Source: Octopus bimaculoides
Lineage: Eukaryota
DNA: 64,000 nt
Reading direction: 5' to 3'
NCBI RefSeq assembly: GCF_001194135.2
Contig: NC_068982.1
Location: 129,296,105 to 129,360,104 of the forward strand
Each line of letters begins with the position of its first letter. The stretch's first letter is position 1. Shown piece by piece: positions 1-63,287 of this stretch. The notes under the pieces are model-generated. The model saw only the letters and a program-made list of their open reading frames with translations, did no database searches and was not told the DNA's origin. The position numbers were made by a program, and so were the translations under genes.

Positions 1-804
1 ACACTGCAAATCTACATCACCTGATTAAAATCACCGTGCTAAGCTGAGTTAATCCGTAGTAAACTTTCATCCCTCTTGCTTCAAATAGAACATCTGCTCT
101 CTTTATCTTTAATCCCAGTTTACATTTAATTTTGTCTTTTGTTTGACGATTCTTTTAACTACTGAAAATATCAGAGTAAAACTCAGCACAAGGTTACTGA
201 GCTCTCTCGTTTTCTCTTTTTTTCACACCCTCCTCTCTCTCTCTCTCTCTCTCTCTCTCAAAAGAATAAAAATTAAAAATGTAAAAAATAGGTTTTCGCC
301 AGATTAATCATTACTGAAAAGGTTTTCATTATACATATTTTATTAATGGTGTTAAGTAGAAGCGAATTTCATTTTGTCGATATTGTTTGCGTGTCCAACA
401 GTCAATTTTCATACAAGGAATAATTAGCCAGACAATTAACCTCATTTTCTATTTCACTGTATTTTTAACATCACAGATTTTTGCTCGCTAAATTCGTCCA
501 AAATCTTTAGGCTGTCTCTTGTACTTAAAAGAGATATTAACGAAGAGAAGGGTGAGATTGAAGAGGGATTCGAAATCACAGAAAGGAAAATAACAAAAAT
601 GTAACTGAGACAGAAAGAGAGAGACAGAGGGAAGGAGAGAGAGGGCAAAGGAGAAATGGGGGGAATATATGTGCACGTGAACATCATCGATAGCGGATCT
701 TTATTAGATCATTTAATTAGTGTAATTAGTACTTATTAATATAACTTTCGAAATCAACTTCAATCAATGAATCGGAGTGTCTTACAAAGTGATTAAAGTG
801 ACGA

Positions 805-960
805 ATTTGCAGAGTCGTTAGAGCATCGGGTAAATTGCTTTGAGTTATTCTTTTTGGCTCTCAGCATTAAGAAGTCAAATACTACAGAGGCCAACTGTGT
901 CGTTTCTTCTTTCGTGGTCGATAAAGAAAGTACCAGTTCTATGCTGGGATAGATTCTTTT
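805..960 (+). mobile_element. degenerate tRNA-derived SINE, family A
   Basis: gcagagtcgttagagcatcggg...gtcgataaagaaagtaccagtt matches the head and body of better-preserved family A copies (e.g. 27586-27795). Confidence 0.6.
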
Positions 961-965
961 CTCTT

Positions 966-1038
<73 letters not shown>

Positions 1039-1454
1039 CCCTCTACTCTCTGGAAGAAATCAGCTGCAGCAAAACCTAGAAAGGGATGCGTTCCACTAGT
1101 TCTAAAAAATGTCAAGACAAGCCGCATGTCATGACGGCGCTCCAACGACTCCGCCAGGAATTGAACACCCTAAGGCAATGCAAAGCAAGCAAAATGCTTG
1201 CGTCGTAGATTAGAAAACCGATAAAGTAAAATTAAGATAATACGAAAAAAACCATTGGGAAAACCTGGCACATGTAGTCATTAAGAGCTAATGAGGCGCA
1301 TAGATTTTTCTAAAAATTAAGCTGTTATGAAATTCATGTCAACGACCTAATAAATAAGTGGATTACAAGTCTTAGTCGAAAAATATATGTAAGTTCCTGG
1401 TTCGAATCCAGTCTGGTATGAGACGGCAATATTAGTTGCTAATTTAGATACAGG

Positions 1455-2210
1455 ATTAGCATTTTGAGGGGATGGGGCTGGTCGATACCCTCGATTCCAG
1501 TTCTTAACTGGTAATTTAGGATCTTTTTTAAAACGGGGGACACATTTTTCATTAACGAAACACTTTGAAACTTGGAACACTGGTAGAATGTGTCATATAA
1601 AACATCTTTTTCTCTTAGTCTTCTTAAAAAAAAAAAGAAATCCCTAAGTTATTCCATGCTAAAGTTGTCGTATTTCTGTAATTTCAACCAATCACTGACG
1701 TCCATTCAGCCGATATACATTAAGTGCCGACTACATAAACAAACGATTCTGAAACAATTCTATCGGTGATAAGGTTAGGGTTAGGGTTAGGGTAAAACAG
1801 CAAATTTAAAATGAAAAAAGCAAATAAAACGAAGGTATGGAGATTAAATACGCTATACATCGCTTAATCAGCCAAAGGAGTAAATGTAAACAACTGAATA
1901 CTTGTCAGTGATTGGTTGAAATTATCGAAATAAGACAATTTTTTACATGAAATAAATTCGAATACAAAAATATTTTTCTGTTCTATAACACAAAATAGAT
2001 AAGTATACGAAGTTTGAAAGTCTTTCGGTACCAAAAACACTATGTAAAACATTAATGAAAAATGTGGCCCCCGTTTTAAAAAAATCCGTAATTTATTTTA
2101 TCAGTCCCAGAGGGATGAAAGACAAAGTTGACCTAGGTGAGGTTACAACCAGAACATAAAGAACCAATATAAATACTGCAAGGCATTTTTCTAATGCCCT
2201 CGCAATTATG
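1455..2210 (-). mobile_element. SINE family A copy split by a MITE insertion
   Basis: The SINE 3' part (1455-1518) and 5' part (2088-2210) are colinear once 1519-2087 and one TSD copy are removed. Confidence 0.75.
1519..2087. mobile_element. 569-bp MITE with GG-starting ~36-bp TIRs, 8-bp TSD and internal (TTAGGG)3
   Basis: TIRs ggatcttttttaaaacgggggacacatttttcattaa (1519-1555) and ttaatgaaaaatgtggcccccgttttaaaaaaatcc (2052-2087). Perfect TSD gtaattta at 1511-1518 and 2088-2095. Internal IR at 1681-1699 / 1904-1922. Confidence 0.9.
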
Positions 2211-2677
2211 TAGGGTAAGGCAATTTCCTGGAGATGTAGAAAGCCTAACGGAAAATTTATAAGTCTTCGAATTGCAAAATGCATCTTAGCATATCACAAG
2301 AAAAAAAATAGACAAAGAAATTTCGTTCAGTCGTTTACAAATTCAGAGTATTTCTTTACCATGTGGAAAAGTTTTATCCAAATTTCTCCCTATCAGGTTA
2401 GAGTTACTATTGAGCAAAGAAAAAGAGATTCTGTTATACCTTATCCCTAAGTGTTCTGTCTTGATCGCAATCTTGTTGCAACATATATTTATGAGAGGAG
2501 CTACATATCTTTCGCAGTCAGTTTTCCCTCAATAAGAATCTACTCATAATTCTGAGCAAAAATTATACTGACCAATAAAAACGCTTTCTTAACACTGAAC
2601 CTCCATCAAATATAGAACAACACTTTTAAATAAAGAATGACACATTAACAATAACTTTATGAATTTTTTGCGATATT

Positions 2678-2880
2678 GGTTTCAAATTTTGGAAGAAGGC
2701 CAGTAATTCTGGGGAAGGGACGAGCCGATTACATCGATTCCAGTGCTTAACTGGTACTTATTTTATAAACCCCGAAAGACTAAGACGACCTTGGCGGAAT
2801 TTAAACACAGAACAAAGACTGACGAAATGCCGCCAAGCACTTTGTCCGGTATGCTAACGATTCTGCCAACTCGCTGCCTT
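2678..2880 (-). mobile_element. SINE family A
   Basis: ggtttcaaatttt...aactggtacttattttat...ttctgccaactcgctgcctt; matches family A consensus. Confidence 0.85.
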
Positions 2881-4368
2881 AAATTCTTTATCATATTAAA
2901 AGGAAGTTATCTGCATATTAGGCTAACGTCAATAAAAACTGTTCTCATTCTTATTTTATTGATTCATACGTAGCTATTTGATTGGATTTTATTCAGTTCT
3001 TCATAAAGAAAATGTCCCGTTTTTTTATATATATTTTTATTTTCTAAAACACCTCTCCATTTTTAAATATCCTTTAGTTCTTTTTCCAGCGTGGAAGAAC
3101 ATTCAAGATTAGTTCCTTTCTTTGATATCTGGCATAAATAGGAGACATTATAAATTATAAAGAGAAATTAAAAAATATTCTATAGTGTTCGTGTCTTTCT
3201 TTTGACCATCAGTGATATAAATGAAGTGAAATAACTCCGACTAGGATTTGAAACTCAGCCGAGAATTCAGCTCTGACCCTGACCAAACGAACATTTCATC
3301 ACGTCGAACATCTGTCTATTTGTCTGTCTGTCTGTCTGCCTGTCTGTCCCCCTCTCTCTCTTTCTAGTGAGGTTTAAGACTGAATGATAAGAACGCTGTT
3401 TTAAATCTTTGAATACTTATCAAATAATCTACTGTATGATGAAATGGATTAGCTTAAAATTGTATTCTTCTAATCCCGGTATTGTCAAAAAAAAAAAAAA
3501 AGGATTATGCAAAAATGATGTTTCAGTACTTTATAACTTTGTACTATTCTCTCTTCTGGATCAATATATTTGAAGATCGTAATTAATTGTTAATATTCAA
3601 ATGTAGTGATTATAGAGTGTGCAATGATTGTATACCCCCACACAAAGTTAAGTATGGATTGCGTTTTACAACTGACAGTCTGTAAACAGATTTTTTAAAC
3701 AAAAATAGACCTTGGATCAATGATATGGATTCTACAACAGCTGGAGTTCCAATCTGCATGACTTCTATTATGACAGCCTGATAAAATATCAATTTCCAGA
3801 TATTCATTTTCCAACATATCAAAGCCGGTTTGGTGTTGAGTAATTTCTTTATCTAAAGTATCTCATTGCTTACACTTAAAATCACAGAGTCCAGTTTAAT
3901 TTTTCATTCCTTCGGTACCAATAGAACTAGTTCTAAAGTTTTGCTTCGTCGACCACAAAATAATTTTACTAACTCTATAATTTTATTTCTAGTTCTCAAA
4001 TCTGACAATAAAAATCTTGAAGCTGATTATTTTAAGAAATGCAGTTTTAAATAATGGTTCTATTGACGTGATGAAAATGTCAACAACGATAGCATACACA
4101 ATATCAACAGTAAGACAAAAATTACACTCCTAATCTATTCGAGTCATTAGGGGAATTTTAATGGAAAGCTAAATTACTAATTTGAAGACCAGGTTTAATA
4201 CTCTTATAAAGAATTTTTTTTTTTTTTAGATATCTAACGAAGAAACGTGTTAAAGGACATATAACTACCATTACTTAGGAAACTAAAACCTGGATTAAGA
4301 GAGTAACCTTCTAACACACTGCTAATATATTTAATCAATTGTATTCAAGGGAATTACGTTAAATCGTC

Positions 4369-4886
4369 AGTTATAGCAAGTAAGGCTGATACAGAAATTT
4401 ATAAAGTCAGATAATGTATATACGTATTTACATTTTAAACAAAGCTTAGCGTGCAGATATGAAGAGTGCATATGAGAGAGAATAAAAGCGTTAGAATCGG
4501 CGATGAAGTTTGAACATGCAATGACCATAAAGCTACATGTCCTTATCGGTACCCTTCATCAGCATTACCATCTTTACGCTATCGAGCATTGAATTTTAAG
4601 ATGGTTTTGAACCTTGCACAATTGCGACTTGTGTCTCGCCTATGTGTTTTGACTTGACTTCGTTTTAAATAGACCGCAAAAGTTTCATCTTACATATATA
4701 TATATATAGCTTTATGTAGCTTTATGGTCATTGCATGTTCAAGCTTCATCACCGATTCTAACACGCTTTTATTCTCTCTCATATGCACTCTTCATATCTG
4801 CACGCTAAGCTTTGTTTAAAATGTAAATACGTATATACATTATCAGTCTTTTATAAATTTCTGTATCAGTCTTACTTGCTATAACT
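4369..4886. repeat. long inverted repeat / foldback element (about 170-bp arms, 175-bp spacer)
   Basis: 4369-4538 is the reverse complement of 4714-4886 with only a handful of differences. Confidence 0.92.
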
Positions 4887-5639
4887 TTTGGGACTTTTTC
4901 TATATTTCTGATGAAGAGCTCCGCTTGAAACGTGAAATCCTCTTTCTTTTCTTTCCTTTCCTGAGCGTCCAATAACACTGTACTTATTCCACGTCCTCGC
5001 GTTATTGTCTTTTCTTGCTTGTTCATGTTTGAATTGATTATNNNNNNNNNNNNNNNNNNNNNNNNNNNNNNNNNNNNNNNNNNNNNNNNNNNNNNNNNNN
5101 NNNNNNNNNNNNNNNNNNNNNNNNNNNNNNNNNNNNNNNNNNNNNNTATGTATGTATACATATATCTAACGTTGAGATGGTTATTGAAATTGAAGTTATT
5201 GAAATCATTTTAAAGGAAATAATTCTTTTATTTTTTGTCAGCCAAACAAAGAATACATGTTTAGATTATTAGAAAAAAGAAAAACGAAACGAGCGATTAA
5301 AACATAACGGAAAAAAACTCAACGGCACATTGCATTACACTTTAGTGTAATAATCTGGGGCCACATTGGTCATTACCTTGAATCATCCATTATTTCTCAG
5401 GTTTTCTTTCTCTTCTTTCTTAAGGGCCACCACTAACCCTGTTCATTTTTATTTCTTTAAATTCAACTTTCTTTGCCTAGATAATATTAGCAGCCTCTAC
5501 CACATGTTTTAATAAGTACCTCCAATGGCGTACTGACAATCTAGTTTGTTTTGCAGATGTGTCGTAGAGACACCCTACCCAGAAATTATTGTTGTTGTTG
5601 TTGCAGATGTTGTTTCCAAAAACTTCCTACGACTTCCAC

Positions 5640-7070
5640 ATCCTAAAATGTTAAACCTTGCAACATACGGGAGAGGATGATACATGACATTAAAGAATTT
5701 GATTAAAGATAAAACTGTTCAAACAACTAGTTTGTTAAGTCCTCGAACATTCTTTTTTAGATCTGATTTGATACTTAAAATGGAACAGCTCCTGAGTGTG
5801 TGGATCGATGATGACACCTAGACGTAACATGCCGATAAATACCTTGGCTATTTAAACTAAAACTAAGTTTGTACGACGGTTTGCAGAAAGTAGAACGAGT
5901 AACTTCTAATGCAAAGCAATTTCTTGTTAATAAAAGCTGATTTGAAAGGTTTAAGAGGCACTTTATTTTTGTACATTAAAATGAACAAGGAAACAGCCAC
6001 TCCTGTAAAATAGTTGTTACTAGTTATTCGGAGGAGCAGAACAAAATATTTGTTAGAGGAGGTTGTACACCAAAACAAGTGCATGATGTTGATGAAACCG
6101 GGATTCTCTGGAAGCAAATGATTATTGGTAAAGAAAAATCAGCCCCAGTCTTTGAAGCTTCCAAATATCGTCTAACGCATTTTTATGAGTGGGGTGGGGT
6201 ACTGCTGAGGAATGAAATTAAAGCCCCTTACTTGTAGTTCACTCTGAAAACTGAAACGCATCCAAAGGCTATTTTAATGCAATCTATATTTGATTTCATG
6301 TTCAAATGAGAAGGCTTGGGTGATACAACGAGCTTTCTCTGAGATTGATTTACAAACATTTTGCTGTGTTATAGAAGAATATAGTCTCATGATTAATATT
6401 TACAACAAAGTATAGCTCCTTTTAGACAATTCACAAGTGACCATAAATTATCTTTTTGATGATGAGTGAGTTGAATATATCCCTAAGAACACAATTTCCT
6501 TGGATAAAGAAGTGATAGCTAACTTCATCGATATGTTACTTTAGAATAACTCGTAAATACAATTGATAGGTAAGTTAAAACCTATAGTTCGACTTTTAGA
6601 AAATATTTAGTATTATAGAAGCTGTAATTATTATAGCCGAGTCATCGTATGAATTGAAACCTTCAGCTTAGAATAGTGTTTGGCAAAAATACAATCAGAT
6701 TGTATCCGTAAGGTTAGGGTTTCTATCCGTGAAGAGTTTTTTTTTTTTTCAGGAGAAAGCCTATGTCAGGTGCAACATTGCGAGACTAGAAAATGGTGCA
6801 AGGTTTGAAGAAGTCGTCGGTTGAGTTAGGATCGAATCGACCTTAAAGAATATAGCTAAATAATGGACTTTGCTGATAACATGATCCTAAACCTGAACGT
6901 AAAATAAATAACTAGAGGAATTCATAATGAGCTCAGTTTTTACACTGATCTGTACAAACAGAAGATACGTCGTAAACGCCTCACAACTTTGGATATGTTC
7001 TTTACTCCTTCAACAGATACAGATGATGATGATGGTCACGATGACGATGACGATGATGATGATGACGTAT
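5640..7070 (+). mobile_element. degenerate Tigger/pogo DNA transposon (transposase pseudogene)
   Basis: Frameshifted remnants MEQLLSVWIDD (5780), VHDVDETGILWKQM (6079-6120), LLLDNS (about 6415) and C-terminal LYKQKIRRKRLTTLDMFF (about 6950-7004), typical of the Tigger/TIGD CENPB-HTH and DDE domains. Confidence 0.85.
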
Positions 7071-7072
7071 AA

Positions 7073-7783
7073 CAGGGGTGTCAAACTTGTTTGGTTTTAA
7101 GAACCGGATTAAATCATAAACTAGCTACCAAGGGTCGGATAACAACAATTATCCTTAAAACTCAATTCATAACGTAGGCCAAAGTAAATGGATAATGGGG
7201 ACAATAAACATTATAATAACTTTATTAACAATGAAGAAAGGAAAGAATATGAGGTGTCAACAAAGTTTGTGCGCAGAAATGTGTGGAAATATCCATATGG
7301 TATACATAGATTATTAAGAAAGAATCCCTAGAGAAAAAGCAGAGATAGAAATTGTCCAAATAAAAGTATACAGTTCTTGAGATGACCAATGCTTGATAGA
7401 AAGTTGGTATTGTTTCAGTTGTAGAATTTTTCAATATTGTTCACACTAGTGGAATCCATTTGGCTAAACACATGCGTAAATTTGAAACATAAGTTGACTC
7501 AACGTTACAGATAAAGTGAAGGGGAAATAGGTCACATCATTTAGTATCTGGTTTCGAAAGTTTTTCCATTGGTTGAGATATATAAAAAACGTCCCTTAAC
7601 GAGCACTGATTCGACTAATCTGTACTGATGTTATCACGGTTCTAGCCGAGCTCAGGCTCTGAACACATGCTAGTGACACACATTTAACATAATAATTAAA
7701 AAGTATTTAATGATAATTTTTATTTAAAAAATTGAGTCAGGGAGGGCTAAACATAGCTGCAGGACATACGTTTGACACGCCTT
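7073..7783. mobile_element. non-autonomous hAT-like element
   Basis: Ends caggggtgtcaaac (7073) and gtttgacacgcctt (7770-7783) are an imperfect TIR pair of hAT/Charlie type; the TSD is only partly recognisable. Confidence 0.6.
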
Positions 7784-7930
7784 CTCTACAAAACAGAAGA
7801 TAGTACTCCTCTTCCTTTCAGTAATTTCTATTTTACCAATTCTCTTTACGCTGCAGTCAACATAATTTGTGATGAGTAAGTATCGTAATAGGATATGACT
7901 GTATTCTCATTCATTCCCTTACATTTTTCT

Positions 7931-8030
7931 TTTCAAATGATCTTACGTAAACTGTGCTGCGTATTTCAAATGATCTTACGTAAACTGTGCTGCGTATTTC
8001 AAATGATCTTACGTATACTGTGTTGCGATA
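7931..8030. repeat. 33-bp minisatellite, 3 copies
   Basis: tttcaaatgatcttacgtaaactgtgctgcgta twice exactly, plus one diverged copy. Confidence 0.95.
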
Positions 8031-8359
8031 TTTTAATATCGTAGAATCCATTCGGATGAACAGGTACATAAAATTGCAAAGATAAATAAAAAAAACAGAC
8101 AAAAACTCCTGCTTGATTCAGCGTGTATAGACAGAGTGAAGAAGAAATAGATCACATCTTTTGATATATGAATTCATGCACAAAAGATGTATTCTTTTTT
8201 CCGAATGAACTCTGTCAGAATGCATCTCAGTTTGTAATGTGGAAATCAATGAGAAAATAGGTTTCGCATTACAGAATTCCGCATAGCAACAATATTTAAA
8301 AGAATACAGGATACTGTAACGCGGGAGAGGCCAGAATTTTAGATATTTGTAATACTTAC

Positions 8360-8579
8360 CAACAACAGTTGGTTCCAGGTCAACAAAGACCGCTCTGGGG
8401 ACATGCTTCCCAGCCCCAGTTTCACTGAAGAAAGTACTAAACGAATCATCTCTCCTCGGTTTCTTATCTGAAGGTACTTGACCATCAGGTTGAATTTTGT
8501 GTTCAAGACAGTAGAGTTCCCAACAAGCATTACCAATTTGTACACCTGCTTGTCCAACGTGGATACTGATACATTCCCT
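8360..8579 (-). CDS. TUBA: alpha-tubulin coding exon (codons 2-74 plus 1 nt; equivalent to canonical exon 2), divergent K40 loop
   Basis: The reverse complement reads tttatttctttcag|AGG GAA TGT ... ACT GTT GTT G|gtaagt. It translates without stops to [73 protein letters not shown], a clear alpha-tubulin N-terminus. The phase-0 intron after ATG and phase-1 intron after EPTVV match the conserved alpha-tubulin exon structure. Confidence 0.97.
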
Positions 8580-9151
8580 CTGAAAGAAATAAAGGAATAC
8601 ATGGTTATAACTATGATGTACCTTTAATTTCTACGAGATGCGCCCCAGTCTCAACCGAAGACGTCAAGGGAGAAAAGTTTTTACATATAAAGATACAAAC
8701 AGTTGAGGTGTCATACAATTGAAAAACTGATGTTTGTGTGTTATAAAAACATTATTCCTTTGTTATAAAATTTATAATAAAACTGAATGAATGAGATTGT
8801 ATTAAACTAGAGTCGATTCGATCAACCAAACTCCTTTACATGTAAGTGATCATATGCCACCACAAGAAATAATTCAACAGCAATATTATAGTTTACCATG
8901 CCAGAAAATTCTATAAAAATAAAGATAAATAAAGATACTAATGTCTTTCCTTGGTCTCAGAATTTCTGATGAAATTGTAAGAGTACCGTCTTGGACAGTC
9001 GTAGACCGGGCGGTGCCCTTCCATCTCCAAGTCTGACCACAGAAGATCTCTTGCTAGAAATGAGAAACAGACAGATAGAAGTAGGAGAATCGATCCTAGT
9101 AGAGGACTGGTGCTTTATTTATCGATCATGACAAGCAAAGTTGACTTCAAG

Positions 9152-10194
9152 TGTAGCGTAGACTCTCTATATACGTACATTCGAACGTAGCAGGGAACAG
9201 CTAGCCTTCGGCCGGTGTTTGTATCCCGTTGAGTCCACTACTCTGATTGGTTGGTATTGGTGCAATTTATCTCTTACTCTGTTGTGCCAACTGACTGCGG
9301 ATAGCCAGTCAGAGGTTTTATATAGCATCACGTGAACAACCTTTTTCGAACCCTTTTCGGGCCTACTGATCCTTATAAAAACCCAGCTTTTTCCTCATTA
9401 TACATCTTTGGTTCCTCCTTTTAAGGTCTCGCCACTGACCACACAAGACACAACCACTTCCAGCGACAACCCCACAGCAGCCACGTCGAGACTTACCAAC
9501 TTCGTCCAACAGCATTCAGCGACCTCCACCTCTGTCCCCGCCATCATCCTAACGTCAACATCTTTACGTACACAACTCAAACAAACAACTCGCCCATGTT
9601 TCAACACTTCTCTGTTCGTGAATTACTTCACCATGAATCAACAGTGAATATACAACCTGCGAGAACTCCCGTACCAAATGACCCAAACAGCAACATCACA
9701 GTCACAACTTCACGTATGACATGTACCTATAACCGCTCAGCATCACGGCCGCAACTTCTTGATACAGTATTTCGACTGCCGTGTACAATTGACTACGAAC
9801 AAGTATTCTCATTCTTGCGTCTATGGACTTCTCACTTCGATGGCTATAGACTCTTTCACTGTCTTTTTCTTCATTGCCATTCCCATATGTTCTTCACACG
9901 CACATACATCTATACTTACACACACACATACATTTTGTTCTCATGACAGTCTGTCTATTATTCTGTATACATGACACATACACAGACACATTGTTTACAT
10001 ATCAATAAATCTTCTCTTAACTATTCTACTCGGTTGTGTCTCTTTTCCCATCTGGCACTTATGTAGTATTCATTTTATATTTATTGTATCGACCGCGTGA
10101 TGTACTAAAGAGCCATTCTCATCACATCACATCGCACTGTCTTTACACAAGTTGTTTGAACTCACAAGGCAAAGAGCCGAAACGAATTCCAACA
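9152..10194 (+). mobile_element. probable solo LTR (Gypsy/BEL-like)
   Basis: Starts TGTAGCG, candidate end TCCAACA, inverted CCAAT (gattgg about 9245), TATA-like ccttataaaaaccc (about 9371-9384). Interrupts a SINE A fragment. No TSD found. Confidence 0.4.
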
Positions 10195-10834: not shown

Positions 10835-11053
10835 GATTTCCAATTTAGGCACAAGGTGTAAAGTTTGGCCGGAGGTGGGAGGTTAGTCTGTTTTATCGTC
10901 CATGATACTTGATTATCTTTTTATTTTATCGACCCCCAGAAGATTGAAAGGAAAATTTGACCTTTGAGGGTTTTAAACTCAGAACGGTAAGAGCCGGAAG
11001 AAATATCCGAAGGTATTGTGTTCGATACTTTAACGATTTTGCAACTCCACCAC
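10835..11053 (-). mobile_element. SINE family A (diverged)
   Basis: ggcacaagg...ttttatcgaccccc...aaactcagaacg pattern. Confidence 0.75.
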
Positions 11054-11214
11054 CAGCGCCGTCTTAGCAGCATTATAGGCCCCACCTCCTGTCAAATCAC
11101 TGCACTGGGACCTATAGTATTTATTGACAGCAATCCACAGCATACGCGTATAAGAATTGGACTCCTTGCCCTGTAGGTAACTGTCCCGTGACCCCATCCC
11201 TTAAGACGGCACTG
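11054..11214. mobile_element. 161-bp hAT-type MITE with perfect 8-bp TSD
   Basis: TIRs cagcgccgtcttag / cttaagacggcactg; TSD tccaccac at 11046-11053 and 11215-11222; related copy at about 27490-27854. Confidence 0.88.
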
Positions 11215-11241
11215 TCCACCACCCTTGTTAAATCTAATAAC

Positions 11242-11457
11242 GGTTCTTTTTTAGGCACAAAGCCAGCAATTTTGTTGGGAGGGTGTGTCGATACGATTTA
11301 CACCAGTATTTGACTGGTACTTTACTTTATTGACCCCAAAAGTAAAAATGGTAAAGTTGATCTCGGCGGGATTTGACCTTAGAATGTATAGCGCTGGACC
11401 AAATGTCATGTGATGTTTTTTCCGACGCCCTAACAATTCTGCCAGTTCGCTGTCCTT
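11242..11457 (-). mobile_element. SINE family A
   Basis: Full-length match to the family A consensus. Confidence 0.85.
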
Positions 11458-11472
11458 GCTAATTCTAATAAT

Positions 11473-38869: not shown

Positions 38870-40042
38870 ACATTAGTACAAGACAAGTTCAATTTTTTCT
38901 ATTTTATTCTTTAATCAGAAGGGAATGCAGTACCCATGACTCGTTATAAGGCTTTTGAAACCGGAGGAAGTTATCCTCAAACCGGAAACATGACCCGAAT
39001 GCTTGCAACAGAGTAAACTCTGCTAAAGACACCCAATGTGTCTGATGTTAGGCAATAGCGGGATTCCAACTAAGAACGGAAAGGGACGGAACAACTACTA
39101 CAAAGCATCTAACCCAATGTTCTTACAATCCACCGCCTTGGATAAGTATAAGTACTTTTTTATTGACTCCGACCCTACCCCAAAAGGGATGTAAGGCAAA
39201 GTTAACCTCAGCGGAATTTGAATTCACAGAGTCTGAACGAAACATAAACTGCGAAGCATTCTATCTGCCACTCTAACGAGTCTGCCATTTCGCCACTCCT
39301 GGGCATCCCATCATGACTTGGGCCTTAGTAATGAAACAAAGTAATTAAACACATTCGGGTTATAATATTTATTCATTTATTTATTTATTTATTTGCTTAC
39401 AAGTTATAAATTGTTGAAACTATACCACTGAATTAAGACAACACTATATTAGTGAATTGAATGAAATAACGTTTGAATATACGAATAGATTAAACAGTCT
39501 ACAATTGAATTATATTTGTGAACACTTTCAAAGGATATATANNNNNNNNNNNNNNNNNNNNNNNNNNNNNNNNNNNNNNNNNNNNNNNNNNNNNNNNNNN
39601 NNNNNNNNNNNNNNNNNNNNNNNNNNNNNNNNNNNNNNNNNNNNNNNNNNNNNNNNNNNNNNNNNNNNNNNNNNNNNNNNNNNNNNNNNNNNNNNNNNNN
39701 NNNNNNNNNNNNNNNNNNNNNNNNNNNNNNNNNNNNNNNNNNNNNNNNNNNNNNNNNNNNNNNNNNNNNNNNNNNNNNNNNNNNNNNNNNNNNNNNNNNN
39801 NNNNNNNNNNNNNNNNNNNNNNNNNNNNNNNNNNNNNNNNNNNNNNNNNNNNNNNNNNNNNNNNNNNNNNNNNNNNNNNNNNNNNNNNNNNNNNNNNNTT
39901 ATTTCTGTATACAGAGAGAGAGAGAGGGGGGGAGAGAGGAGAGAGATGAGTGTTTATGTATTTGCCTCTAAATATGTGTGTGTGTGCGCGCGCGCACTTA
40001 TGTACATCAATATCACTATGTATATGCATCAATATCACTATA

Positions 40043-41108: not shown

Positions 41109-41920
41109 AATGCTTTTCATAGAATGATCATGGTATATTACTGACCAATCACTAATCCAATATGTAAGCTATAAATAGACAAAATTGAAGATCTGTACTT
41201 CTAAATCACAAATTCAGTCAAATGTATACAGATAGGTTGAGCGAAATGTATACATGGTAGCTAATCATAGTAACAGTCAGATCATCCCTCATATCATACC
41301 TGTCTTATGTATGTATGTATGTATGTATGTATGTATGTATGTATGTATTATGTCATTATTCAATTTATTTCAAGATTAGTACGAATAGAGAAAAACCAGT
41401 TTCTAACCTAGATCCAAGCTTCCTTGATTGGAATTTCAACATCAACAACAGAGTATTTTTGTATGTATGTATGTATGNNNNNNNNNNNNNNNNNNNNNNN
41501 NNNNNNNNNNNNNNNNNNNNNNNNNNNNNNNNNNNNNNNNNNNNNNNNNNNNNNNNNNNNNNNNNNNNNNNNNNNNNNNNNNNNNNNNNNNNNNNNNNNN
41601 NNNNNNNNNNNNNNNNNNNNNNNNNNNNNNNNNNNNNNNNNNNNNNNNNNNNNNNNNNNNNNNNNNNNNNNNNNNNNNNNNNNNNNNNNNNNNNNNNNNN
41701 NNNNNNNNNNNNNNNNNNNNNNNNNNNNNNNNNNNNNNNNNNNNNNNNNNNNNNNNNNNNNNNNNNNNNNNNNNNNNNNNNNNNNNNNNNNNNNNNNNNN
41801 NNNNNNNNNNNNNNNNNNNNNNNNNNNNNNNNNNNNNNNNNNNNNNNNNNNNNNNNNNNNNNNNNNNNNNNNNNNNNNNNNNNNNNNNNNNNNNNNNNNN
41901 NNNNNNNNNNNNNNNNNNNA

Positions 41921-42750
41921 CAGCTCCCAAAATTATTGCAGAACTTAATGACCACCTCGAGAACCCACTTTCCACAAAAACTGTTCGCCGGGAGCTGCCC
42001 AAAGCCGGATTTCACGGGAGGGCTGTAATCAGAAAACCACTACTTTCAAAACAAACGTTGCAAAGTGTTTAGAGTGGAGTAAAAAACTACAGAATTGGTC
42101 CCTTGAGCAGTGGAAGAATGTTATTTTCTCAAACGAGTCATCCTTTAACTTATTTCCGACCACCGGCCGAGTATACGTGTGGAGACAGCCAAAAGAAGCA
42201 TTTGACCCAGACTGCCTTCTTCCAACTATTAAACATGGAGGAGAATCTGTGATGACCGGGGGTGGGGGCTATATCTTGGAAATCCACCGGCCTAATGGCT
42301 TCCCTTCATGGCAGAATTAATAGTCAAGACTATTTAAGCATTTTATCTGTTCAAATTCATCCTATGGTTGCGGAACTGTTTCCGGAGAGAAACGCAATCT
42401 TCCAGAATGATAATGCACCAATTTACACAGCTAAAGCTGTTACTGAATGGTACAAGGAACATTCTAGTGAAGCTGAACATCTTTTCTGGCCACCACAGTC
42501 TCAGATTGAACGTTTATGGTGCATTTTAGAAAAACAAGGAGTCGATATCCTCCACTATCAGCACTACAAGAACTGGAGACTGTTTAAACTGGAGAATGAA
42601 CAAAAATTCCTTTGGAAACAATTCAAACTTTGTACGAGTCCATACCTCGTAGAATTCAAGCTGTAATTAATATCAAAGGTGGTCCTACCTCTTATTAAAA
42701 TAAATTTGTTTGAAATTATAAAGTATTTCCATTATTTTGTCCAACCCCTG
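41921..42750 (+). mobile_element. Tc1-family transposon relic (5' part lost in gap)
   Basis: APKIIAELNDHLENPLSTKTVRREL..AGFHGR, WKNVIFSNES, KHGGESVM, IFQNDNAPIYTAK, WPPQS, IE.LW; 3' TIR attattttgtccaacccctg followed by TA. Confidence 0.95.
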
Positions 42751-43175: not shown

Positions 43176-45891
43176 CTTCACTGGTTGTTTTAGGCATGGT
43201 GTTCTAAGACTGATTAACCAATGTGTCCTTCCTTTTGATGAACGTTTTGCTCTTATTTCTAGCAACTCGAGTGGCCACTCAAACTCTCTCGTTCGTTCGT
43301 TATTGTGTTCTGTAGTAAAGTGTAGTGCTGCTGATAATACTGTTGATGTTTAGTCCCAGTTCAGCCATATCGAACAGACATATCGTTGGTGATCCAGCTG
43401 TGACAATACTATTTTTGATCTGCGTCCAGTAGCTGATTTATTCTCGAAGCTTGCCAGTCAACTATCCAAAAGACTGCAAGCCTCTTTGGCAGAAGAATGA
43501 AATGAATTTTCAATATTTGATTTTAAAAATTATTTTTATTATATTATAGTTATTTTTTTTTTATAGAATTCTGTAATATTTCTCTTTACTAATTCCGAGT
43601 TCTAATTATTTAATTTTTTTCTTAGATCTAACAACTTTTCAAATATGTACAGACTAGCAACTACTTCGACACTAGGCTTGTGTTGGACGGCATTGTTTTA
43701 CGGTTTAAATATGTTGCTATTGTTGATCTTATTACTACTGCCAGAGCACAAGTGTGATAATGTTTTATTACGTCATAATTTTTTTAAATAGGTGGCGTCA
43801 TGGCTTCAGAACCGTCTCTCTAATGTATCAGATGATTTAAACAAATACGATTTCAAAAGAAATTATACATTTCCTGATTCTCTATTCGTTTCCAACCAAC
43901 TTACATTTACAAATAACTGTGGAATTTCTATGGATACAACTGGTAAATTTATTATTTCTTGTCAGTAGATTCATTGGAAGATTCACAATATAATTTTCAC
44001 TTTGTAATTTATAAAGTAGAATGTATTTAATAAACTGGTTATTAAACTTTTGAATATTTTACATTAAGTGTAGAAGCCGTATAGGTTAGAATAGTGAACA
44101 GTGATTGCTTTGAAGTAGCTACTCAGTTGAAAATTTCATCACGATAAATTGAAAAATGGTGAGTAAATCACTTCACTCATGCTGGTAAGTCCTTAGTGAA
44201 GGTTTCAATGTCACAATTTTTCGTTTTCTATCGATGAAAATGACAAAGCTGTTATGTATAGACTAAATAAACAGATAGCTTCCGTGGTAAATTATTATAA
44301 GTGTGTCAGCTGTCGTAGTTTAATAAATCTGATATTTTACTTTTATATTGATTAAAATCAATTTGGATTTTGAGAGGAACAACATAACAGGTGTTACAAG
44401 ATGCCTCCACGGAAACAAATTTATGTTCTGTTCTTTATTCTAGTGTTGATCCCAAATTTATTTAATGAACGTAATGTTACATCCGAAAGGAAGGTTATGA
44501 TACTGGGCTATTGCTACTGTTGCTAATGAGATATCTATTTATCCCGCGAGACCACGGCTCTGTTCGTGGAAAGATTGTTTCAGCCTATGTTTGCAAAGAA
44601 GCATCTTATCCTACTGATAAGGCTTACATGGCGGACTGTCTCGGCTGTAGCAATTACATTTAAATTTAAATGTACTGTCTGTCAATATTGTTTGGGTACA
44701 TTTTTTATTGGTGAACGCGTTCGTTTCATTTCTTTCCTTGCCCCCNNNNNNNNNNNNNNNNNNNNNNNNNNNNNNNNNNNNNNNNNNNNNNNNNNNNNNN
44801 NNNNNNNNNNNNNNNNNNNNNNNNNNNNNNNNNNNNNNNNNNTAGCTGTTTTGCAATGTCTGAACTTTCCTCTTTCTAAATCCCCACTTATTTCATGCCT
44901 TTAGCAGAGCGAAAATCTGCAATGTCGTCTCACCTCTCAAAAAATTAATTTTCAATGATTTCATCTTTCTCTTACAGATATCTTTGAAACAAAGATGAGA
45001 GTGTCACCTTTATGTTCGCTTTCCAAAACATACCCAGGGTTGGAAAAAAAAAGCATGAAATATTGATCTTTGTTATGAAAAAATCGTTAGAAAGACAAAC
45101 ACTTGGTGATGCAACCAATGCGTAATGACTTGGACTGATTTACAAAGATAATGTATTCCAGATTTGAGATTTGCACTTCACATTCAGCATTGTATGGTAG
45201 AATATACAGAAACTAAAGTAAATAATATTGTAAAGACATGTAATCTAATGTTCTGTTGTTTCTGCCAATTTGCTGTCTTACACTGATATGTACTACACCT
45301 AATAGAAAAGTATAGCTGACACCTATAAGAGTAGATAACGTGACTGCTTAGTAAGCAGTCACGTTACCTGCCTTTTGTGTATGGATGGATCAAAATATCA
45401 ATGTGCATTTGAGGATATCAAAGAGGTTGATAATCTATAAGCGACAGCATTGTTTGTTCCTATTTGCTTGGAATCAAAGTTATTACACATCCTGTGTACA
45501 ACAGCCCAGTCAAAAGATCTTTTCCGTAATGAATGGGTAAAAATTGGAAATAAAATTTGTTTTCAAACATGATTAATCTAATCAATGATAATATAAAGAC
45601 AAAATGAAATATGCTATTCCATTATGTTTGTCATGAAAAACAAAAACAATTAGCAATTTTTTTGCTTCATCTGGTTTTTAAAAAATTACTGATCACAACA
45701 GAAATCGATGTATATTTTTGGTGAGGGGTGAGGGATAAGGAAGACAGCTGAAACATATTCAACATAGAATTTACTACAAACCATGTAAATATTTATTATA
45801 TTTTACATTCGTTGACATTTAACCTCTAACTTTAAGAGAGAGATCGCAAATTAAGTTTTGTCGCATTCATGTATATATATATATATAACAG

Positions 45892-46110
45892 ACGCAAGCG
45901 TGGCTCTGTGGTAAGAAGCTTGCTTTACAACCACTTGGTTCCGGGTTCACTCCCACTGTATGGCACCTTGGGCCAGTGTCTTCTATTATAGCTTCGGGCC
46001 GCCCAAAGCCTTCACTAAGGACTTACCAGCTTGTAAGTGGATTTGGTAGACGGAAACTGAAAGAAGCCCACCGAGATGCAATTCGAAAAAAGCCCGCCTC
46101 TTACATAGAT
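45892..46110 (+). mobile_element. SINE family B, 5' half
   Basis: gcgtggctctgtggtaagaagcttgc...gatttggtagacggaaactgaaagaagccc. Confidence 0.88.
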
Positions 46111-47207
46111 ATATACGGATAGACAATCTTCTATGTACTATGCTGAATACATGAGGTGTTCGTCTGGTATGTTGATTTTTTTGTTTATTTTTATGTGTCT
46201 TGACCATACTATACTGATGAGTAGAAGTTGCATATTACTGTAATAACTACGAAATCATGGTCTATAGTTTAGTTTGTTTTTAAGGGGCTAGCTTTGAGAG
46301 CTGCATTTCCTCGCGTTCGGTAAAAATGTGTTTATTATGGTAGTTTGACCTTTGAGTCCCTCTTAGCGTGAGGCATTCATGTATAGTAATGCCCTTATAT
46401 AATATAATATATANNNNNNNNNNNNNNNNNNNNNNNNNNNNNNNNNNNNNNNNNNNNNNNNNNNNNNNNNNNNNNNNNNNNNNNNNNNNNNNNNNNNNNN
46501 NNNNNNNNNNNNNNNNNNNNNNNNNNNNNNNNNNNNNNNNNNNNNNNNNNNNNNNNNNNNNNNNNNNNNNNNNNNNNNNNNNNNNNNNNNNNNNNNNNNN
46601 NNNNNNNNNNNNNNNNNNNNNNNNNNNNNNNNNNNNNNNNNNNNNNNNNNNNNNNNNNNNNNNNNNNNNNNNNNNNNNNNNNNNNNNNNNNNNNNNNNNN
46701 NNNNNNNNNNNNNNNNNNNNNNNNNNNNNNNNNNNNNNNNNNNNNNNNNNNNNNNNNNNNNNNNNNNNNNNNNNNNNNNNNNNNNNNNNNNNNNNNNNNN
46801 NNNNNNNNNNNNNNNNNNNNNNNNNNNNNNNNNNNNNNNNNNNNNNNNNNNNNNNNNNNNNNNNNNNNNNNNNNNNNNNNNNNNNNNNNNNNNNNNNNNN
46901 NNNNNNNNNNNNNNNNNNNNNNNNNNNNNNNNNNNNNNNNNNNNNNNNNNNNNNNNNNNNNNNNNNNNNNNNNNTATATATATTATTTACAATAGTTTTA
47001 GTGACCAATATTGGTGTAATTAGGGTGTGTTCCCCTCAGGCCAGCACTAAGTATGCCGTCCCCACAACGTCAACCTCACAGACCTTAGCATATTCTTAGT
47101 TCGTAAAACCCATTCCTGTTAGTAAGCTCACTGGAAAATTGAATCTAGATCGAAGACTCGGCACGTCGTAACTTTACCTTCACTCCATTGTATTCGCATT
47201 GTGAAAG

Positions 47208-47686: not shown

Positions 47687-47721
<35 letters not shown>

Positions 47722-47875
47722 ATAGGCTTCTTTCAGTTTCCGTCTATCAAATCCACTCACAAGGCTTTGGTCGTCCCGAGGCTATAGTAGAAGACACTTG
47801 CCCAAGGTGCCACGCAGTGGGACTGAACCCAGAACCATGTGGTTGGTAAGCAAGCTACTTACCATACAGCCACTC
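47460..47875 (-). mobile_element. full-length SINE family B with poly(A) tail
   Basis: Reverse complement of the 62889-63287 type; poly(T) at 47462-47484. Confidence 0.92.
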
Positions 47876-54425: not shown

Positions 54426-55381
54426 AATCCGAAAAACTGCAATGTTTTTTGTCTGTAAAATATTTGAAAGACCGTAACCTANNNNNNNNNNNNNNNNNNN
54501 NNNNNNNNNNNNNNNNNNNNNNNNNNNNNNNNNNNNNNNNNNNNNNNNNNNNNNNNNNNNNNNNNNNNNNNNNNNNNNNNNNNNNNNNNNNNNNNNNNNN
54601 NNNNNNNNNNNNNNNNNNNNNNNNNNNNNNNNNNNNNNNNNNNNNNNNNNNNNNNNNNNNNNNNNNNNNNNNNNNNNNNNNNNNNNNNNNNNNNNNNNNN
54701 NNNNNNNNNNNNNNNNNNNNNNNNNNNNNNNNNNNNNNNNNNNNNNNNNNNNNNNNNNNNNNNNNNNNNNNNNNNNNNNNNNNNNNNNNNNNNNNNNNNN
54801 NNNNNNNNNNNNNNNNNNNNNNNNNNNNNNNNNNNNNNNNNNNNNNNNNNNNNNNNNNNNNNNNNNNNNNNNNNNNNNNNNNNNNNNNNNNNNNNNNNNN
54901 NNNNNNNNNNNNNNNNNNNNNNNNNNNNNNNNNNNNNNNNNNNNNNNNNNNNNNNNNNNNNNNNNNNNNNNNNNNNNNNNNNNNNNNNNNNNNNNNNNNN
55001 NNNNNNNNNNNNNNNNNNNNNNNNNNNNNNNNNNNNNNNNNNNNNNNNNNNNNNNNNNNNNNNNNNNNNNNNNNNNNNNNNNNNNNNNNNNNNNNNNNNN
55101 NNNNNNNNNNNNNNNNNNNNNNNNNNNNNNNNNNNNNNNNNNNNNNNNNNNNNNNNNNNNNNNNNNNNNNNNNNNNNNNNNNNNNNNNNNNNNNNNNNNN
55201 NNNNNNNNNNNNNNNNNNNNNNNNNNNNNNNNNNNNNNNNNNNNNNNNNNNNNNNNNNNNNNNNNNNNNNNNNNNNNNNNNNNNNNNNNNNNNNNNNNNN
55301 NNNNNNNNNNNNNNNNNNNNNNNNNNNNNNNNNNNNNNNNNNNNNNNNNNNNNNNNNNNNNNNNNNNNNNNNNNNNNNNNN

Positions 55382-61230: not shown

Positions 61231-62689
61231 GTATAACGGATGCATGACCAAAGATTGAAACCACAGTCTTCACATTTGTTTCTTTCGTTCTCGGATTGTG
61301 CTCTTAAAATCTTGTCATATTCACTATCATCTTATGTTTACCAGAGGAGGATCTAGATAAGCATCTTTGTAAAATACTACAAACAAATTCTGTAAAGTAT
61401 AGAGTCGAGAGGACCTTTTAGTCTGGTTGAGAACATGACAATCCCGCTAGTAACGGGGCCACAATAAAATGTACTAAGTACCCCCTGTAAAGTGGTTGGC
61501 GTTAGGAACAGTATCCAGCCGTTGAAACCAAGTGGATAAGTAGATATGCAGTGCCTGTTTTATTGACCTCGATGAACTTCCAACGTAAAGGGACATAACA
61601 AAATACTGTAATACATACATATTGTTTTCCGGAATTTGGCACGCCAGAGCTGGGACATTTTGAAAAATAACCCCAATGTAATCGGTAGAACTGTACGCAA
61701 GTCTTATTTTATGAAGACAATTCGTGTATAGTTCTGCAAATTATATTGATTCTTGAACTGATGAGAACACGGATGTTGTTACGTAAGTAAAACGTTAATG
61801 TTCGAAACCGGTACACAATTAATTCTTTATTCTGTATATTTCTCATTTTGTCTTGCCCGCTTATGTTCTGGTGCTTTGCGAAATTTTTCTGGAGCACATT
61901 ATTTCTCTTTGTGGTTGAGTCGTTGATGACCTCTTTCTAGCATATAGGATGTCCACTTAGTGGTCATCCCTTCTTATACACATGTACGTATATTTATATG
62001 TATAAATGTCTAAATATATATGTATGCATGCAGACACCTATGTGTATATGAGGATGAAGTTGCGTGCACATATACACCCATACATANNNNNNNNNNNNNN
62101 NNNNNNNNNNNNNNNNNNNNNNNNNNNNNNNNNNNNNNNNNNNNNNNNNNNNNNNNNNNNNNNNNNNNNNNNNNNNNNNNNNNNNNNNNNNNNNNNNNNN
62201 NNNNNNNNNNNNNNNNNNNNNNNNNNNNNNNNNNNNNNNNNNNNNNNNNNNNNNNNNNNNNNNNNNNNNNNNNNNNNNNNNNNNNNNNNNNNNNNNNNNN
62301 NNNNNNNNNNNNNNNACATACATACATGCGTGCGTGTGGGGGGGATATGTATGAGTACGTACATGCACATATATGTTTGTGTGTGTATGTGCATGTACAT
62401 ATACATGTTTGTGTGAGTGTGTACGTCTGTAGATTTTATGAACGCCGGAGGTTTTATGTCTATGTACTGTGAGAATATGGTTGCGTGTATTTTTTTTCTT
62501 TTTTCTTTTTTTCTACTTATTAGAGTAACTTCCCTTTATTCAACGGTTTTTCATATCGTCTATTGCCATTAATAGCCGACGAGAATGCATCGTAGCTCTT
62601 CGCTTCGACATTCGAAACTCCGAGTACTATACTGACAACTTACTATTTGTTCTAAATTATAGGCGCGGGCGCGCATATTCACGCGCGTG

Positions 62690-62888: not shown

Positions 62889-63287
62889 GAGTGGCTGTGT
62901 GGTAAGTAGCTCGCTTACCAAGCACATGGTCTCGGGGTCATTCCCACTGCGTGGCACTTTGGGCAAGTGTCTTCTATTATAGCCTCGAGCCGACCGAAGC
63001 CTTATGAGTGAATTTGGTAGACGGAAACCGAAAGAAGCCCGTCGTATATATGTATATATCTATGTATGTGTGTGTATATGTTTGTGTGTCTGTGTCTGTC
63101 CCCTCAACATCGCTTGACAACCGATGCTGGTGTGTTTACGTCCCCGTAACATAGCGGTTCGGCAAAAGGAACCGATAGAACAAGTACTAGGCTTACAAAG
63201 AATAAGTCCTGGGGTCGATTTGCTCGACTAAAGGCGGTGCTCCAGCATGGCCACAGTCAAATGACTGAAACAAGTAAAAGAGTAAAG
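62889..63287 (+). mobile_element. full-length SINE family B
   Basis: gagtggctgtgtggtaagtagc head through ggcggtgctccagcatggccacagtcaaatgactgaaacaagtaaaagagtaaag tail. Confidence 0.95.

Follow-up and report, generated by a model that had tools for sequence, protein, structure and literature searches.

Divergent or K40-less luminal loops are found in several alpha-tubulins, including human TUBA8, most C. elegans alpha-tubulins other than MEC-12 and Drosophila alphaTub67C; the loops of these isotypes are neutral or acidic, Gly29 is kept and the isotypes are expressed. Isotype-specific K40 loops are already a known kind of variation, and loop variation is common among tubulin gene copies. The loop has been defined as P37-D47 by cryo-EM and molecular dynamics, with acetyl-K40, T41 and I42 packing against the globular body and with the glycine-rich stretch forming a tight turn that only glycines allow (PMC6535015). 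Our literature search returned no paper that brings octopus together with alpha-tubulin and K40, or RNA editing together with cephalopod tubulin isotypes. Here we describe an alpha-tubulin exon with a glycine-free K40 loop in a 64-kb stretch of an octopod genome (the window, meaning the whole stretch of DNA that was analysed). We consider it slightly better than an even bet, at a probability of roughly 55%, that this exon is exon 2 of a divergent alpha-tubulin paralogue maintained by selection, the rest of the gene lying outside the window.

The exon occupies positions 8360-8579 of the window on the minus strand, and its translation corresponds to coding exon 2 of alpha-tubulin, residues 2-75 in canonical numbering. 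It is 220 nt long (73 codons plus 1 nt), is open throughout without stops or frameshifts and ends in phase 1, its last base being G, the first of the Asp76 codon. In tblastn it matched residues 2-75 of human TUBA1A with an E value of 1e-37, and its translation matched the Pfam Tubulin family (PF00091) at E 3.4e-16, its 60.5 bits lying above the cut-off of 33. All 60 of the top PDB matches listed were alpha-tubulin chains (E ~1e-39), and nearly all named protein matches were labelled tubulin alpha. Residues 2-28, including the T1 nucleotide-binding loop GQAG, are the consensus of 550 alpha-tubulins. On these similarities, the assignment of the exon to the alpha class of the Tubulin/FtsZ GTPase superfamily is secure; the whole functional gene to which it would belong is putative, exon 2 alone being seen in the window.

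The boundaries of the exon are equally regular. The upstream intron ends (8580-8600, minus strand) with the polypyrimidine tract tattcctttatttctttc followed by AG at 8580-8581, directly before codon 2; the flank immediately 5' of the exon reads ...ttatttctttcAG, and the acceptor junction is tattcctttatttctttcAG|AGG GAA TGT. At the other end, a consensus donor (8352-8359, minus strand), G|GTAAGT, follows the first base of codon 76, with GTAAGTAT directly 3' of the exon and the junction GTT GTT G|GTAAGTAT. Introns after codon 1 and, in phase 1, after codon 75 are those of the conserved animal tubulin gene structure, and the same exon 2 boundaries and phase are found in two alpha-tubulin genes (A and B) of Argonauta hians and in five further loci (L001-L005). 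Both in tblastn and in the alignment to relatives, tubulin homology ends exactly at the acceptor. A processed pseudogene was rejected, since the similarity to tubulin breaks off precisely at a consensus acceptor and a consensus donor, both of them at conserved intron positions. Capture of the exon by a transposon was also rejected, as no terminal inverted or direct repeats flank it. The sequence-only reading that preceded this analysis had described an intact alpha-tubulin exon, and the open frame, the splice sites and the tblastn and Pfam matches all bear this out. It had also pointed to an MREC motif; the motif is encoded here from R2 onward, but Met1 lies outside the exon and must sit in an upstream exon.

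The exon was compared with alpha-tubulin N-termini gathered in four database searches and from two cluster listings, which are taxonomically mixed; of 632 proteins, ~550 gave usable segments. Outside the loop, it departs from the consensus of these ~550 sequences only at K29, V36 and S50, the other 61 of 64 residues being the same. V36 is shared with 33 of 550 alpha-tubulins and S50 with 47 of 534. Codon 29 (8496-8498, minus strand), as placed by the codon listing and the alignment, is AAA (Lys), at a position that is Gly in 548 of the 550 sequences and Lys in none; the codon is GGA in both Argonauta paralogues and GGG in L001-L005. The earlier claims that a near-invariant glycine had been replaced by lysine and that the change was focal, with canonical flanks, therefore hold against a broad sample.

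The K40 loop, from P37 to the DD pair, lies at 8445-8474 on the minus strand and is encoded by CCT TCA GAT AAG AAA CCG AGG AGA GAT GAT, one codon fewer than in canonical genes. The translation is SDKKPRRDD, against the canonical SDKTIGGGDD, so that K40-K41-P42-R43-R44 stands where K40-T41-I42-G43-G44-G45 is otherwise found and the loop is glycine-free; the codon listing and translation thus confirm the replacement of TIGGG by KPRR, one residue shorter, that had been read from the letters. Lys40 itself (AAG at 8463-8465) is kept within the P37-D47 loop together with S38-D39, as in the K40-acetylatable class of alpha-tubulins, although the T41-I42 and Gly43-45 turn context canonical for that class is absent and K41-P42-R43-R44 is present instead. 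K40 would thereby keep a predicted acetylation site for alphaTAT1/MEC-17. When the loop was set beside 192 distinct loops, its net charge of +1 lay at the top of a range from -6 to +1 (mode -2), and its four basic residues were matched in 0 of the 192 others. The description of the loop as strongly basic overstates a net charge of +1; the loop is only slightly cationic because D39 and the DD pair remain. A loop stripped of glycine, four basic residues clustered within it and Lys at position 29 together form a combination that is genuinely rare among the sequences compared.

The relatives place this rarity in perspective. The K40 loop is the most variable segment of exon 2 across eukaryotes, in both sequence and length, and every octopod paralogue that we compared has a non-canonical loop: SDKAVGGKDD in Enteroctopus dofleini Q06331, in which K40 is present, SDVAIGGRDD in Argonauta hians gene A (GAB1601148.1), in which K40 is absent (V40), and IDTFIPGGDD in gene B (GAB1601147.1), in which it is also absent (T40). 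With the loop this variable and two of the octopod paralogues lacking K40, the novelty that the sequence-only reading attached to the loop was overstated. The window exon resembles these paralogues in detail. A basic residue stands just before the DD pair in Enteroctopus (K), in Argonauta gene A (R, AGA) and in the window (R), and a proline two residues before the DD pair is found in Argonauta gene B and likewise in the window. The window codons CCG AGG AGA (P-R-R) align with CCA GGA GGG (P-G-G) of gene B, and the last loop Arg codon, AGA, is the same as the R45 codon of gene A; therefore, the loop is a variant on a family pattern and not random sequence. The differences are also clear: Enteroctopus Q06331 and Argonauta A and B keep G29 and at least two loop glycines, all of which are lost from the window exon, whereas K40, which both Argonauta genes lack, is kept in it. 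By these comparisons, octopod alpha-tubulin paralogues normally diverge through rewiring of the loop. None of the Enteroctopus and Argonauta paralogues is shown to be the orthologue, because dS is 1.7-2.9. At the DNA level the exon is 80% and 78% identical to the two Argonauta exon 2 copies and 75% identical to the next-best loci, and the codons AGG (R2) and AGT (S6) are common to the window exon and Argonauta hians.

Several observations on the related loci may be recorded here. The two Argonauta hians genes are adjacent and convergently oriented (L006, 11140-11362 on the plus strand and 19132-19354 on the minus strand; also L007), and no further tubulin gene or exon turned up in the 10 kb that flank the locus on each side. 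Over the first 35 codons of exon 2, genes A and B barely differ, which suggests gene conversion. The donor after exon 2 of gene B is of the GC type, G|GCAAGTAT, at the same position as the donor in the window. The loci L001-L005 (Logan runs SRR19451413, ERR13098443, ERR13098441, ERR12041346 and ERR12041345) are complete alpha-tubulin genes of five coding exons, including an ATG-only exon 1; their loop is SDNTMGRGDD, with N40 in place of K40, and V36 and V75 occur both in these loci and in the window exon.

Selection on the exon was assessed by the Nei-Gojobori method with the loop excluded. Flank dN/dS was 0.028 against Argonauta gene A (dS 1.7) and 0.020 against gene B (dS 2.9). Synonymous sites are saturated and flank residues almost unchanged; therefore, strong purifying selection must have acted for nearly all of the separate history of the exon. 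These values speak against long-standing decay, in keeping with the earlier view that the change is focal rather than a general decay, and they leave the exon either functional now or dead only very recently. A maintained paralogue would account for the low flank dN/dS and the near-consensus non-loop residues, for an intact frame with consensus splice sites at conserved intron positions and, as far as the comparisons reach, for a concentration of amino-acid change in the very segment that is most variable across eukaryotes and that differs in every octopod paralogue compared. Against it, G29K, at so constrained a site, could signal relaxed constraint. The same lysine can be read, together with the loop changes, as the first neutral substitutions in an orphan exon or young pseudogene fragment left by partial duplication or rearrangement. 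We regard such an origin as possible but doubtful: the frame is unbroken, acceptor and donor both fit the consensus, non-synonymous change is found only in the variable loop and at three other sites, two of which carry common variants, and the low flank dN/dS leaves room for a very recent death only.

Further evidence on the side of an orphan exon comes from the surroundings. With full alpha-tubulin as the query and E values up to 10, tblastn found no tubulin segment in the 64-kb window besides exon 2, and the other parts of a complete protein (the T4 loop with its GGGTGSG signature, the intermediate domain, the C-terminal domain and the acidic tail) were not found in it. In Argonauta, residues 76-451 are encoded by a single 1.1-kb exon that begins 0.09 kb (gene A) or 1.16 kb (gene B) past exon 2; in the window, tblastn found no exon 3 in the 8,359 nt downstream of the donor, which counts against a maintained paralogue as it counts for an orphan. 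A weak tblastn match at 1349-1531 was dismissed as chance, with 26% identity and an internal stop. The stretch 1-8351 (minus strand), the presumed intron 2, contains no tubulin-coding sequence by tblastn and includes an N gap at 5042-5146 and three copies of a 33-nt tandem repeat (7931-8029; 100%, 100% and 88% identity), which lie 330 nt past the 3' end of the exon. Three accounts of the missing exon 3 can be offered. A long intron is plausible, given that intron 1 of Argonauta gene B is ~5.9 kb and that long introns are ordinary in such genomes, a point that also tells against an orphan exon; an assembly problem is possible, given the N gap at 5042-5146; and a lone exon without a partner is possible as well. 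The long distance to any exon 3 is also the sole support for a further arrangement, in which the exon is one of two mutually exclusive versions of exon 2, with a canonical exon 2 and exon 3 beyond the window start. This seems extremely improbable to us: no second copy of exon 2 was found in the window, the two Argonauta genes have no such arrangement, and we know of no precedent for a mutually exclusive exon 2 in alpha-tubulin.

On the 5' side, exon 1 with its ATG was not located upstream in the window, where there is also no 5' similarity to Argonauta. Two ATG|GTRAG candidates for exon 1, at 12244 and 29622, were uninformative because Argonauta gene A uses ATG|GTTTGT. For the maintained paralogue, the gene would have exon 1 with the ATG upstream and a large 3' exon more than 8.4 kb downstream, both beyond the window.

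Searches for a protein containing the exon were likewise negative. Word-indexed protein searches with queries of 74 and 42 aa, which reach targets only up to ~1.75 times the query length, returned no protein with this exon; a 273-aa chimeric query that reached full-length tubulins found none with K29 or KKPRR, and neither did an exhaustive search of 50%-identity representatives. Such an absence would be expected of an orphan exon and stands against a maintained paralogue, but it is weak evidence because length-filtered matches and clustering at 90% and 50% hide near-identical tubulins. At the DNA level, the 24-nt loop sequence had 0 exact matches in JGI metagenome contigs, and the window ORFs at 8339-8602 (minus), 11811-12266 (minus) and 9596-9946 (plus) had no exact match in a contig index.

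The quality of the sequence itself has to be considered. The window is a stretch of gapped short-read draft scaffold, AT-rich (34% GC) and rich in microsatellites, with ten N gaps of 97-900 nt (5042-5146, 25754-26313, 31044-31451, 32014-32450, 39542-39898, 41478-41919, 44746-44842, 46414-46974, 54482-55381 and 62087-62315), many of them flanked by (TG)n or (TA)n microsatellites. Local sequence and distances are therefore to be taken with caution, which weakens the case for a maintained paralogue and raises the prospect of an assembly or sequencing artefact, in which a canonical or paralogue-like loop was misread in the purine-rich GGAGGAG tract, for example through two indels that cancel out. 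Out of frame, a Gly-Gly-Gly tract (GG AGG AGG A) does give Arg-Arg, and when the G after CC is dropped and one G restored, CCGAGGAGAGATGAT matches CCAGGAGGGGACGAT of Argonauta gene B at 12 of 15 positions, against 9 of 15 in frame (hand alignment). However, K29 (AAA against GGA) lies 33 nt away, out of reach of such indels, the reading frame runs on intact before and after the loop, and short-read data are unlikely to contain two errors 8-12 nt apart that offset each other exactly. We therefore judge an artefact to be improbable.

Repeats are frequent elsewhere in the window. Interspersed repeats of ~100 nt were noted at 47717-47816, 31504-31603, 62948-63047, 46030-46069, 11545-11619 and 27652-27726, and many further copies of these families lie in the Argonauta hians loci L006 and L007, with identities around 80% and within 75-95%. 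Together with the DNA identity of the exon to Argonauta and the R2 and S6 codons common to both, these repeats give good support to an octopod origin of the window. Three neighbouring, diverged repeat copies (62-83% identity, spaced by 400 and 232 nt) lie at 10921-11680, ~2.5 kb upstream of the exon. A remnant of a Tc1/mariner-type transposase (41920-42666, plus strand) directly follows the N gap at 41478-41919, with matches to HTH_Tnp_Tc3_2 at 41920-42072 (E 1.5e-8) and, below the Pfam cut-off, to DDE_3 at 42262-42666 (E 6e-5). Rfam and tRNA scans of the window were empty.

The codons of the unusual residues bear on a special case of the maintained paralogue, in which A-to-I editing would rescue or tune genomic G-to-A changes, returning AAA, AGG and AGA towards Gly in part of the transcripts. 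Lys29 (AAA), Arg43 (AGG) and Arg44 (AGA) differ from Gly codons by G-to-A alone, at the first or second position, and all four differences at these three former Gly codons are G-to-A relative to GGA or GGG in relatives. Coleoids recode extensively, and a published model, with which these changes would fit, holds that editing can rescue G-to-A substitutions (PMC7703385). Several features of the exon count against it. The local pre-mRNA structure does not stand out from shuffled sequence (z = -1.0, with equally good folds in 13 of 100 shuffles), no inverted repeat pairing with the exon was found, and a return from K29 to G requires two edits in one codon. ADAR disfavours a G as the 5' neighbour, and the A of both Arg codons follows a G. 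We therefore hold editing as the explanation for these changes to be very unlikely, and an expressed isotype whose genome-encoded KKPRR and Lys29 are edited in part of the transcripts (AGG and AGA to GGG and GGA, AAA to GGA) to be equally so; if it were true, the charge and flexibility of the lumen and the acetylation of K40 would be tunable at the RNA level.

Returning to a maintained paralogue with an unedited loop, we can suggest what the substitutions would do. Octopod alpha-tubulin paralogues differ mainly in the luminal H1-S2 'K40' loop. With canonical flanks, the GQAG nucleotide-binding loop included, the protein would probably still fold and enter polymers as other alpha-tubulins do. 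Position 29, which we take to be the C-terminal end of helix H1, would gain a further positive charge there from G29K. In the loop, K-P-R-R would remove T41 and I42, the hydrophobic residues that pack on the body when K40 is acetylated, and would remove the glycine turn, and the local charge would shift from acidic to slightly cationic. The loop may thus be more extended; recognition by alphaTAT1 may be weaker or altered even though K40 is kept, and contacts with luminal proteins or with the neighbouring protofilament may be changed.

If expressed, the exon would represent a natural alpha-tubulin isotype with K40 in a cationic, glycine-free loop and with replacement of a glycine that is near-invariant in the ~550 alpha-tubulins compared. 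It would offer a ready-made test of how alphaTAT1 access, the binding of luminal proteins and lateral contacts depend on the charge and flexibility of the loop, and it would be further evidence that octopods use paralogues to vary the lumen-facing side of the microtubule. A specialised role in sperm, cilia or axon, as the sequence-only reading proposed, would be speculative. If it is an orphan exon or pseudogene fragment, it would be a mere footnote on tubulin gene turnover in a repeat-rich genome.

Among known systems, canonical metazoan alpha-tubulin (human TUBA1A/1B and Drosophila alphaTub84B; chains 7ysq_A and 1jff_A) is identical to the window exon over residues 2-28 and 51-75 and is like it in residues 46-49 (D-D-S-F), in S38-D39-K40 and in the boundaries and phase of exon 2. 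The window exon differs from it by G29K, by KPRR in place of TIGGG, which brings three extra basic residues, and by M36V and N50S, both of which are common variants. With human TUBA8, the C. elegans isotypes and Drosophila alphaTub67C, the likeness is of another kind: there too, it is the luminal H1-S2 loop, and through it the acetylation of K40, that varies between isotypes.
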